Part shown: one piece after another, positions 35,759-40,221 of the stretch | How the letters are laid out: every line of letters starts with the position of its first letter | Numbering within the stretch: the stretch's first letter is position 1 | DNA from: Geosiphon pyriformis uo1 | Lineage: Eukaryota; Fungi; Glomeromycota | DNA length: 64,000 nt | Direction of reading: 5' to 3' | Assembly: GCA_016748015.1 (NCBI GenBank) | Contig: JAAOMT010000129.1 | Coordinates: 372,001-436,000, forward strand | Translations under genes and position numbers: made by a program | The notes under the pieces: generated by a model | Database searches by the model: none | Told to the model about the DNA's origin: nothing | Seen by the model: only the letters and a program-made list of their open reading frames with translations

Positions 35759-36150
35759 GTTAAAATATGTTCGGAAACAAAGGTTTAAATTAAGGTGAAG
35801 TTACCCAAGCGATAATATTTGCCTTGGTTCCATAATTGATCTGATGGTTTTTTTTCAATTTTGGTCGCTATCAAATTTGTCTATTTTAGGTTTTTGAGAA
35901 ACCTCTTAAAAAGATATTTTTGTAATTATTTAAGCCAGAAGTTTAAATCTTGAGAAAAATGTGTAGAATAAATTTTTTTAATGGACATATCGATGATGAG
36001 AAAAATCATGATATAGGATGTTCATTTTTGGTATTACTAAATTCATTTTTTAATATGGCGAATGATCTACATGATTAAAAAGTCAAAGTGCTACTTCATA
36101 ATTGACAATTGTGAAAATTGTTAATAGCGTACTGTCATATGAAATTTAGA

Positions 36151-36262
36151 TGATAGACAAAAGGAATGCAGAAATCTGCATTGTTTATCAATAAGTGCTA
36201 ACCCTGGATGGATTGTAATATATCAATAATAAACAATGTTAAGCATTGGTACTATTTCCCAG
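36151..36262 (-). ncRNA. Candidate Fanzor omega-RNA scaffold / transposon right end
   Basis: Directly 3' of the Fanzor ORF. Imperfect 16-bp inverted repeat (36179-36194 / 36223-36238), hairpin AATGCAG-ATTT-CTGCATT (36165-36182), then ...TTTTGTCTATCA. Boundaries are inferred. Confidence 0.55.
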
Positions 36263-36267
36263 AGAGA

Positions 36268-37650
36268 ATCAAGGCTCCTGGAGAAAAATTCCACAATTTC
36301 GACATTTATATATCGCAGATCTTCCGATGTTTTGGATGTTTCCAAAGCAACTACAAATCTTGGGACGTATAAGCTTAATTTTGGATAATAACATGAATTC
36401 TTAATTCCTCTGTTTTGGCTATTAAACGTTGTCGAAATCGATAATGTGCCCAGCCGAAGCATTTTTCGTACTGATTTTGGTATAATTTTTCTTGTTTTTC
36501 CAATTCACCATGTTAGATAGCGTCGAGAATTAATGGGTAAAAAAAGCAATAACTTTTCTGTGAATTTCATTTTGCTGGTGTTTAATTTTTCGTTGTATAC
36601 ATGCTATTGCTTTATCAAATCTTTTAGCTTTCTTCTTTTTGAATTTAGAAGTTGATTGTATTAACTTATTTTTTTTTGATATAAAATTGTCCATGTAGAT
36701 ACAAATACAAATAATACTTCCAATATCTTGTTAACCAATTTTACCTATTCTTTTAGTAGGAGAATACCATGTAAAAGGTGTATGAATGCCAGGATCAATA
36801 GAGACTGCATGAATAAACCTATCCACTTGGGTTTCATGGACTTGTTTTTCTATCTCATAAACTCAAGCAAACTTCCACTCTTTAGTTTTCCGAAAATAAG
36901 TAAGTTTGGTATTACATGTAATTTTGTGTATAAAGGGCCATTTGTTGTTTTTGTAAAAGCCATAATGAATCTTTATTATTATTTGGGCTTGTGTCGATGT
37001 GGACATTCTTATATTTATGAAGTGTAAAGAAAAGTAAGAAAAAAGTGATTCCAAAAAAATTTATTAAAAATTTTGGTCACGAATCGTAATAGTTTGATGT
37101 AACTTCATTTTATGCATTCAGTGCTTGATCAATTTGCTTCATCTAAAAAACTTTGTAAAAGTATGTTCAACTTAACAACAGCTTTACAAAACTTTTGTTC
37201 GCCCCAAATAGCTAAATTATTATTGAAAAGAAGTTGTTTTTGTTGAAAAAATTATAGGTTTTAACCAACTTTTTTCAATATTATTTTCATTTTTTCTAAT
37301 TTAATGTTTTTTCTTCTATCTTATTACTGTATTAAAAGCAAATCTGGCCAATTCCATCCATTATTTTAAGAGTTGTTTTTAAAAATTATTTAAATATATT
37401 TTTTTTGTGCTTTTTAATTTTTATGTTTTTAATTGTTTATTATTTTTGCATTTTAAAATTGATGGTAAAAATATTTTTGGTCAATTCATATTTATTAAAA
37501 ATTAATTTGTTAATAAGAATTATAAATTTTACAAAATTAAAAAACAAAACATATTAAAAAAAGTTGAAATAACAGTATTAATTATAATAAATAACCAAAA
37601 TTTTCAAGATTATTTTACAACTTGTTTATTTTAATAAAGTTTTAAAAAGT
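36268..37650 (-). pseudogene. Fanzor2 / IS607-TnpB-like RuvC RNA-guided endonuclease relic
   Basis: Reverse strand across frameshifts: LK(P)Y(W)NKQV..(L)WL(P) N-terminal motif, KIY(P)NNF(Q)KQLLK(Q)WM(G)LARFAFN, RuvC-I ETQ..AVSIDPGIHTPFTWYSPTK..GKIG.QDIG, QRKIKHQQNEIHRKVIAF, SNMVN.KTRKI..KSVRKML.WAHYRFRQRLIAKTEEL.IHVIIQN(E)AYTS..CS..GNIQNIG.S.IYKCRNCG, then GIFL. The RuvC-III DRD segment is missing. Confidence 0.88.
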
Positions 37651-40221
37651 TGTTTTTATTGTTTGGTAATAGTAATAATAATTATAGTTAATTATATAAG
37701 TAAACAAATAAATAATCTAAAAATAAAACTATTTACATATAGCAAATATTATTTTATATTAACAATTATTATTAGTTTATATTATTTTATAATAACAAAA
37801 ATAATATATTATAATATATTTTTTTATAAAACTATAATTATGTATATATATATTAATTTTAATAATAATTTAACAATAATTAAAAAATTAATAAAAAAAT
37901 AATTTTTATAAAAACAAATTATTAATATATTTAATAAAATTTTTAAATAATAATTCTTAATTAAAGTTATTTACATTATTATTAATTAAGAATAAAAATT
38001 TACAGTTATATATTTTAAAAAATAGTATTATTATTATTTTGTATTTCTAAATAAAAATATTTTAAACAATTAAAATAATAATTTTAAAAAAAATTTTAAA
38101 ATAACAAATAAAAAATTAATTTAATTTTTAAAAGTTTTTTTATAGCAAATTAAAAATAAAAAATTACTTACAAAATATTAATATTAATAATTATTTTAAT
38201 AAAAAAACTATAAAAACTTATTTTATAATATTTAATTATTTTTTAAAATTGTAATAATTAATTGTTAAATAAAAAAAAATAATAACAAAAAATTTTATTT
38301 TTTTATTTAATAATACAATAATTAAGTGTTTTAAACTAAACATAAATTTATATACTTATTATATATAATTAACTATTCAGACTAATCAAAATAATATTAT
38401 GAATCTATTATTATTATAATTAAATTATTAGTTTTAAAATAAAAAAGACATAATAAATATATTTTAAATAATATTTTAAATACTTTATTAATACTTAATA
38501 AATAGATAATATTAACAAATAATAAAACAGATAAATTATATTAAAAATTTCAATTTTTTAATTAATTTAGCAAATAATTTTATATATTATATAAACATAT
38601 TATTAAGTAAAATATATTTTTTTTAATACTAATTAATAATAAAAACCAAAAAAATTATTATTTTAGCTAAATTATTAGTATATTTATTATTAAACACATT
38701 TAAATCACTTTAAATTTTTTTGAAAATAATATTTTTTATATATTGTTTTTTTAATCAATAGCAATTATAAAAGGTTGCTTTTTTTGGTTTTTTTTCAAAA
38801 ATATAAATATTTAAAACAATTTAACTGTTTAAATTAACTATTATTAAATACAAAAAAACCATATTTTAAAATTAATATAATTATCTGCAATTTTGCTATA
38901 GTTAAAAAAATTATACTCAATATTTTAACACTAATATTTAAGCCAAGACATAAAAAAAATATAATTATTTTACAAGTTATAATAAATATACTTAAAAATC
39001 TTAAAAAATTATTGATAAAAATCTCTATAATTATTATTTTAATATTTTTCAAATTAATAATAATAATAATAATAATAATAAAATTAATTAATTCACAAAT
39101 ATTTTCAAAATAAAAATAATATTCTAAAAATAAATAATTATTAATATAAATCTTTTTATTTAAAATTAAATAATACATTAAATTATTTAAGTACTAAATT
39201 TTTTAAATCTAGTTTTTTTAAACAACAGAAGTATTTTTAGTTAAAACATATCTTTTTTTATCCAAAAACTGTTTAATAAAAACAATTCTAAATCTTTTTA
39301 AAAAACAAACAATATTCAAAAAATCATAAACCTTAAAATAATTAATATTGGTATTCTTCTAATAAAATAAAATATATAAAACAAATTATTAATAAAAAAT
39401 ATATTAAATTTCAAAAAAATTAATATAATACTAGCTAAAAAACTATTTGTAAAATTAATATATAGTTTACAAAAGTAAAAAAATAAATATATTAATATTT
39501 AATTAAGTATTTATAAATTCAAGCTATAATAATTAAAAAGTTAATCTAAAATATTATTTGTATTTAAAAAACAAATCACAAATACTATTTTGTTCTTAAT
39601 TTGAATTTGTTTTAAAGTTTTTAAATTATAAAATAATAAATTGCTTTATTAAAAATTCTTTTAGATAAACTAGTTTTTAATTTTAGACTTTTTTTAATAA
39701 TATTGTTCTATTTATTATATATATTTTTTAAAATAAAACTAAATTGTATTTTGTACTTAATAATAAGCTAAAAAATCATAAAAACCAAATAAAAAACTGT
39801 TTATTTATTATAATTTTCTTCAATACTTTGTTTACAAAAAAATTTTATATTTATATATACTTTAATTAAACTAAATTTTAAAAAATTTATAATTAATAAA
39901 AAGAGTTTAATATATTTATGTAGCTTATTTTATTTAGCAATTAAGATTAGTAAATTATTAATATTTAAAAAAATAATTTGTATTTTTAATTAATAAAAAT
40001 AGTCATTATTATTAATAAAAATATTATTAATAAAAAAAAAACATTAATAATATTTAAAATATACTACATAATAACTTGGAAAAACTTCTTTCTTTTGTTC
40101 CTCCACAAATCCCAAAAAAGAGTCAAAAGTTTTTTGGAAGAAGTTTTTTACTATTCAGTATGATAAATCTAAACCATTTCTGCTTAATTACAAGGCCGTT
40201 GTTGGTCCTAGTATTGCTGTT

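Follow-up and report, generated by a model that had tools for sequence, protein, structure and literature searches.

Among IS607 TnpBs, that of ISXfa1 is the characterised one, and for TnpB in general RNA-guided cutting is thought to help the element persist. Fanzor1 nucleases have enlarged REC domains with kinked helices and other transposon partners. Fanzor2 nucleases are compact and TnpB-like in architecture, and there is interest in them as small genome-editing tools from eukaryotes. IS607 transposons typically have neither terminal inverted repeats nor target duplications and recombine at a fixed dinucleotide. A DPG motif together with a relocated Glu marks every Fanzor as well as the prokaryotic pro-Fanzors, and IS607 elements have a fixed right-flanking nucleotide (PMC10711439). 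Fanzor2 has already been reported as broadly present in fungi (PMC10432273).

We analysed a stretch of 64,000 nucleotides from Geosiphon pyriformis uo1 (contig JAAOMT010000129.1, positions 372,001 to 436,000 of the forward strand), called the window below, and we are highly confident that its minus strand carries, from 36206 to about 37716, a dead and hypermutated IS607-type DNA transposon with a Fanzor2 nuclease. The described system that best matches the Geosiphon family in both sequence and fold is ApmFz2 of Acanthamoeba polyphaga mimivirus (L79, ISvMimi; PDB 9B0L). Both have a DPG RuvC-I, a Glu six positions N-terminal to the zinc ribbon, a C4 ribbon and a DRD…NGA RuvC-III, as well as an N-terminal extension ahead of the helix-turn-helix and an association with IS607. 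They differ in that identity is ~21%, the Geosiphon host is a fungus and not a giant virus, the window copy is dead, and no sequence similarity is detectable between the N-terminal extension of its clade and the ApmFz2 N-terminal domain.

The prokaryotic pro-Fanzor IS607 TnpBs, mostly cyanobacterial, form the sister clade on our tree at 30-50% identity and share with the Geosiphon family the tnpA-then-nuclease order, the fixed right-flanking nucleotide and an out-of-frame overlap of nuclease and tnpA. They are bacterial and measure ~350-390 aa from the helix-turn-helix onward, whereas the Geosiphon family resides in a eukaryotic genome, has introns in one subfamily, and has a right end in …CC followed by G instead of a GG core. 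Mollusc Fanzor2 proteins (Dreissena polymorpha, Mercenaria mercenaria; "Fanzor2*") are homologous to the full-length relative P0021 (E 1e-14 to 1e-16), and have the same motifs; that of Dreissena forms a very long branch outside the Geosiphon clade. The transposons that carry these mollusc genes move by cut-and-paste and have TIRs and TSDs (PMC10711439). The Fanzor1 proteins SpuFz1 and GtFz1 (PDB 8GKH, 9CER) belong to the same superfamily and have the same active-site fingerprint, but their fold similarity is low (TM 0.23-0.32).

A decayed IS607-type element in the window

Three-frame translation of the minus strand over window positions 36100-37800 recovered every motif that the original prediction had listed, in the same order and at the same places. 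We then compared a family profile (alignment A2, built from 40 full-length relatives) with all 2,593 stop-free pieces of the window; five collinear minus-strand pieces match (E 5e-13 to 5e-4), and nothing else among the 2,593 was significant. When the window copy is read through its stops, the match spans profile positions 171-440 (E 1.2e-42) with 10 stops inside. The original observation is confirmed, and the motif set and profile matches go far beyond what chance would give. Pfam and NCBIfam searches with single window pieces returned no match; such pieces are too short and too mutated for these libraries.

The relic had been described as a nuclease gene at 36268-37650. This was the right place, but the extent was too small. 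In a blastn comparison of the window with 46 family loci, many copies lose their likeness at window 36204-36208, and homology begins at 37664-37716. The relic therefore runs from 36206 to about 37716. Instead of a lone nuclease gene it comprises an entire IS607-type element, in which a tnpA relic and a defined right end can be recognised. Its 5′ limit can be given only roughly, since the homology peters out in a microsatellite and AT-rich sequence. A fungal bestrophin gene (PF25539, E 1.3e-13) adjoins it. The features, all on the minus strand, are as follows.

36206-37716, minus strand: whole recognisable IS607-type relic; 3′ (right) end exact, 5′ limit approximate
37660-37716, minus strand: (ATT/ACT/ACC)n microsatellite, from comparison of eight copies
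37443-37655, minus strand: tnpA serine-recombinase relic, residues ~115-190 of intact TnpA, from DNA homology to copy L015
37319-37378, minus strand: nuclease N-terminal helix-turn-helix relic (KQLLK-stop-WMELARFAFNTVIR), by direct reading
36866-37060, minus strand: WED-domain relic (…NNKWPFIHKITCNTKLTYFRKTKEWKF), profile positions 216-245, E 5e-4
36734-36862, minus strand: WED strand and RuvC-I with DPG (SIDPGIHTPFTWYSP), profile positions 248-290, E 4.8e-13
36533-36730, minus strand: long helical segment from RuvC-I to RuvC-II, profile positions 292-349, E 1e-12
36378-36512, minus strand: RuvC-II region relic (…WAHYRFRQRLIAKTEELRIHVIIQN), profile positions 370-408, E 9.5e-8
36272-36400, minus strand: zinc-ribbon remnant and truncated RuvC-III (…CSCFGNIQNIGRSAIYKCRNC, then GIFL), profile positions 414-440, E 3.2e-5
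36375-36377, minus strand: TAA in place of the relocated catalytic Glu (Ealt), read in the window as QN-stop-AYTS
36225-36257, minus strand: conserved sub-terminal hairpin (AAATAGTA-CCAATG-loop-CATTG-TTTATTATT), which folds in most of 16 copies
36206-36224, minus strand: right-end terminus GATATATTACAATCCATCC, where 16 non-redundant copies end

The DPG of RuvC-I lies at 36788-36796 within SIDPGIHTPFTWYSP, where the window reads SIDPG, and its D, P and G are invariant or nearly so in the 40 relatives. WAHYRFRQRL falls inside 36378-36512. The zinc-ribbon remnant reads CSCFGN...YKCRNCGIFL, with C-S-C…C-R-N-C kept across a frameshift, and has no Pfam match on its own. At the N-terminal side, WMELARFAFN is found at ~37319-37378; the corresponding block in full-length relatives is Pfam HTH_OrfB_IS605.

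A large and degraded family in the Geosiphon genome

Compared with its own 128-Mb genome, the 1.4-kb stretch gave 66 DNA matches (67-93% identity). The A2 profile gave 100 matches among 726 first-look candidates, and Pfam PF07282 (TnpB/Cas12f zinc ribbon) gave 82, most of them with stops (68 of the 82 pass the cut-off); a search of the genome with PF01385 gave no match. The genome thus holds a Fanzor2 family, as had been predicted, with at least 100 matching fragments in two subfamilies. The accompanying hope of intact copies was not borne out, as no open frame exceeds 298 aa among the 90 scored candidates.

Subfamily A comprises the window copy and dozens of others. Subfamily B numbers about four copies (L021, L023, L038, and L024) and has a higher GC content. 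Two short AT-rich introns, one of 75 nt and one of 90 nt, interrupt its conserved blocks; their borders (GTAAGT/GTAAAA…TAG, i.e., GT…AG) are those of spliceosomal introns, which this subfamily has acquired. Even the best copy, L021, whose exons were searched separately and not as one joined spliced model, has an in-frame TAA where L023 has Gln, and its middle part is broken.

The NCBI Geosiphon pyriformis protein G9A89_008819 aligns exon by exon with contig C621 at 96-98%, which identifies the host as this species or a closely similar strain. Two observations concern the assembly and its annotation. The gene model of G9A89_008819 (G000:C621:362148-364410; L048, L049) fuses a Fanzor relic with a methyltransferase gene of the ICMT/PEMT type (Pfam PF04140, PF04191, and PF07282) and is probably a chimeric annotation. 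A contig start (G000:C783:1500-3288) and a contig end (G000:C649:449070-450857) have 1,789 identical bases, which looks like an assembly overlap, with the two resolvase matches there being one locus.

tnpA relics tie the family to IS607

Relics of an IS607-type serine recombinase are found directly upstream, in the same orientation, in L053 (E 9e-34), L054, L030, L033, L027, and L015 (E 1e-11). Window positions 37143-37664 align with L015 DNA at 72-73%, and the stretch 1504-1701 of L015 matches intact TnpA (E 1e-11). Because the window DNA aligns with the tnpA-relic stretch of L015, the window holds a tnpA relic as well; tblastn of intact TnpA directly on the window was not significant. The catalytic-serine segment of tnpA is absent from the mainstream subfamily-A copies, which look like deletion derivatives that depended on less truncated ones such as L053. 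L056, L057, and intact metagenomic relatives encode an entire TnpA that has both a MerR and a Resolvase domain.

The microsatellite next to the tnpA relic is (ACC)n in less decayed copies, where it matches the Thr/Pro-rich linker of TnpA and of the nuclease extension; at this linker one frame of the intact relatives gives TTATSTTS and the other gives PPPQPPP. The length of this (ACC/ACT/ATT)n repeat varies by >200 bp between copies (window, L002, L008, L010, and L015).

In L015 (G000:C692:1468760-1472297) and L010 (G000:C787), the 5′ parts of two subfamily-A copies stand tail to tail and inverted. L010 has an inverted tnpA fragment ~500 bp upstream, and the two loci have >700 bp of upstream flank in common; a larger composite repeat is possible. 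Separately, the intact tnpA-Fanzor2 element of L057, a 26-kb Logan contig, has gene-dense surroundings that include an RNA ligase gene (PF09414), a setting that could be a giant virus or a prokaryote.

Lesions of the window copy

The original prediction described this copy as dead, and comparison with L022 bears out each lesion named, i.e., the TAA at the Glu codon (36375-36377), the frameshifts, and the loss of RuvC-III. Where the window has its stop before AYTS, L022, L007, L030, and other copies read QNEAYTSKTC. The catalytic Glu, at the sixth position N-terminal to the zinc ribbon, is lost from the window copy and present in family copies, its context being NEAYTSKTC in L022, L007, and L030 and SEAYTSKTC in L021. 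DNA alignment with L022, L004, L032, and L007 places a one-base insertion just after AYTS. Relative to L022 (…YKCRNC-KTVTDRDENGAW-GIFLRAL), the window copy has lost KTVTDRDENGAW through an in-frame deletion of 36 bp whose junction falls between 36293 and 36292. The lost segment includes the RuvC-III Asp (DRD-x-NGA), which is kept in L022, L021, L032, and L026. A further deletion of 11 bp lies near the 3′ end of the copy.

The GGA microhomology proposed for the 36-bp deletion was not seen in the DNA alignment with L022, L004, L032, and L007; an origin through a TTG microhomology followed by one later substitution is at best possible from the aligned sequences. The region of the RuvC-III Asp has been deleted independently in several copies with different junctions (window 36292/36293; L038:1441-1731; L003, L002, and L014; alignment A3). 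The affected region is flanked by AAATTGT and GGAATTTTTCTCC and coincides with a GC-rich hairpin that is strongly predicted; the recurrence could reflect slippage at that predicted hairpin or chance.

Base composition has changed as well. GC content is 25% in the window copy vs. 41-42% in the best subfamily-A copies, and the comparison with L053 gives 82 C>T or G>A changes, against 27 opposite ones. This C-to-T and G-to-A bias has driven the GC content of the window copy down to 25%. The nuclease is dead because of its ~10 stops, its frameshifts, the TAA at the catalytic Glu, and the missing RuvC-III Asp; the window tnpA is dead because its catalytic-serine segment is missing and it has many stops. 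The copy can therefore neither transpose nor cut DNA.

Right end and candidate omega-RNA

The 16 non-redundant copies that define the right end finish with …TTACAATCCATCC, followed by one fixed purine and then by unrelated DNA. The base after the right end is G in 12 of the 16 and A in the other 4; in the window it is A (36205). It is preceded by CC, unlike the GG core described for ISXfa1. The sub-terminal hairpin lies ~20 nt inside the right end, and its stem is kept by paired changes in L032 and L033; it is a candidate for either the last omega-RNA stem or a recombinase-binding site.

The 150-nt 3′ ends fold weakly better than shuffled sequences (z from -2.2 to +0.2), and the predicted folds have a recurrent long-range pairing of AAUUGUAA (the CRNC codons) with UUACAAU at the end. 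As evidence for a putative omega-RNA of the Geosiphon family these predicted structures are weak. Comparing copies in search of the left end, we found homology running into the microsatellite, and the upstream blocks were common to some copies alone.

The N-terminal extension coincides with tnpA

A PYWN/LWLP N-terminus had been taken as a mark of Fanzor2. The block "PYWN…LWLP…SWFS" is indeed conserved among the long relatives (alignment A4), and so within the clade, but it has no detectable similarity to the N-terminal domain of a solved Fanzor2; the extension matched no solved structure, whether searched as a single sequence or as a profile. The DNA of PYWN…LWLP also encodes TnpA in another frame, the PYWN codons corresponding to G-L-x-T-L-L-E and the LWLP codons to E-I-V-V-T.

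L056:2078-2815, L057:4039-4773, L058, and L060, and bacterial loci L062-L141: tnpA inside the 5′ extension of the Fanzor2/TnpB frame

In four intact metagenomic elements the 5′ portion of the long nuclease frame contains the whole of tnpA, and over tnpA the nuclease frame has 0 stops and the third frame 15-18. Of the 28 bacterial loci with a recognisable same-strand tnpA, 24 have a nuclease frame that shares at least 290 nt with it. Over 44 tnpA genes, loci that are related to one another and hence not independent, stops in the nuclease frame are 3.4-fold depleted (64 observed vs. 218 expected from synonymous-codon shuffles), whereas those in the other frame are not (443 vs. 495). It may be that throughout the clade, from bacterial pro-Fanzors to fungal Fanzor2, the nuclease frame is open across 100-280 tnpA codons (+1 frame) and the extension arises by dual coding or as a frameshift fusion, a tentative proposal on which our judgement is nearly balanced and leans slightly against. 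Our literature search found no paper describing an overlap of tnpA with a nuclease extension.

Fanzor2 affinity and alternative explanations

The original prediction assigned the relic to Fanzor2 partly on its motifs. Because DPG and the relocated Glu mark all Fanzors and pro-Fanzors, these motifs do not decide the subtype; the assignment stands through the match to ApmFz2 in sequence and fold, the IS607 tnpA relics, and the tree, and the Fanzor2 subtype of the family is supported by these sequence comparisons and a predicted structure. By sequence, the solved structure closest to the full-length relative P0021 is mimivirus L79 (ApmFz2, 9b0l; E 3.5e-17; ISDra2 TnpB: 5e-9), which is also the best match of the L021 C-terminal piece (E 4.7e-9); TnpB and Cas12f follow. 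An AlphaFold model was made of the relative P0012, not of the dead window copy (pLDDT 79), and Foldseek again placed 9b0l first (E 1.8e-18, TM 0.60), with a TM of 0.66 by target length for ISDra2 TnpB. On a quick maximum-likelihood tree (SH-aLRT support, midpoint rooted, without labelled Fanzor1, and with Geosiphon rows read through with X at each break), Geosiphon subfamilies A and B form a clade (support 99) with sequences of Diversispora epigaea and Cetraspora pellucida and with unnamed metagenomic proteins, and this clade containing Glomeromycota is sister (support 97) to prokaryotic IS607 TnpBs of cyanobacteria, Chloroflexota, and others.

It is very unlikely that the relic is instead a Fanzor1 from a transposon of eukaryotic type, for example hAT, Mariner, or Helitron. 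Fanzor1 has DPG and the relocated Glu too (PMC10711439) and is common in early-diverging fungi (PMC10432273), and the left end of the element was not fixed by copy comparison. However, the sequence searches with the L021 piece and P0021 against solved structures gave no Fanzor1 chain even at E 10, and SpuFz1 (E 1e-5, TM 0.31/0.25) and GtFz1 (TM 0.28/0.23) rank only 37th to 48th in the Foldseek list of the P0012 model. Fanzor1 chains overall reach a TM of 0.23-0.32, against 0.60 for ApmFz2 and 0.66 for ISDra2 TnpB, and the upstream relics are IS607 serine recombinases.

In a different reading, a prokaryotic TnpB, not a eukaryotic Fanzor, reached the assembly by recent bacterial insertion or contamination, for example from a Nostoc endosymbiont. 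Geosiphon does house Nostoc, and many of the closest prokaryotic sequences come from cyanobacteria such as Moorena, Lyngbya, Microcoleus, and Oscillatoria. Yet the copies sit beside fungal genes in fungal chromosomes, are AT-hypermutated like other repeats here, and are old, being 67-93% alike; subfamily B has spliceosomal introns, and members from Diversispora and Cetraspora fall in the same clade, apart from the prokaryotic clade. We regard this origin as extremely unlikely. Those introns bear on another question, whether the gene is alive and its seeming stops and frameshifts are introns or assembly errors, given that Fanzor genes can hold introns (PMC10530073), as subfamily B does, and that indel errors occur in long-read assemblies. 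The stops, among them the TAA in place of the catalytic Glu, fall within conserved blocks, an in-frame deletion has removed the RuvC-III Asp, the breaks have no splice signals, and GC is 25% vs. 41-42% in the best copies, all of which makes a living gene here vanishingly improbable.

Discussion

By analogy with ISXfa1 and ApmFz2, an active element of this family would have two genes on one strand, the first being tnpA, which would encode a serine recombinase with a MerR-type DNA-binding head. TnpA would excise the element as a double-stranded circle and insert it by crossover at a short fixed motif. Fanzor2 would bind an omega-RNA, transcribed across the 3′ end of the element into the flank, and would cut DNA matching this guide beside a short motif.

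The dead transposon in the window belongs to an IS607/Fanzor2 family that is hereby documented in Glomeromycota. Our literature search found no paper pairing Fanzor with Geosiphon, and in the supplements examined from two Fanzor surveys we found no Glomeromycota entries. A bacterial-type element spread through this fungal genome to at least 100 fragments and, as far as the scored copies show, afterwards became wholly inactive; C-to-T hypermutation contributed to its inactivation. The overlap of tnpA with the nuclease frame, if real, bears on the origin of the Fanzor2 N-terminal domain. The genome offers no ready nuclease among the scored copies, and the usable nuclease leads are the intact metagenomic relatives (loci of P0155, P0157, P0159, and P0026).
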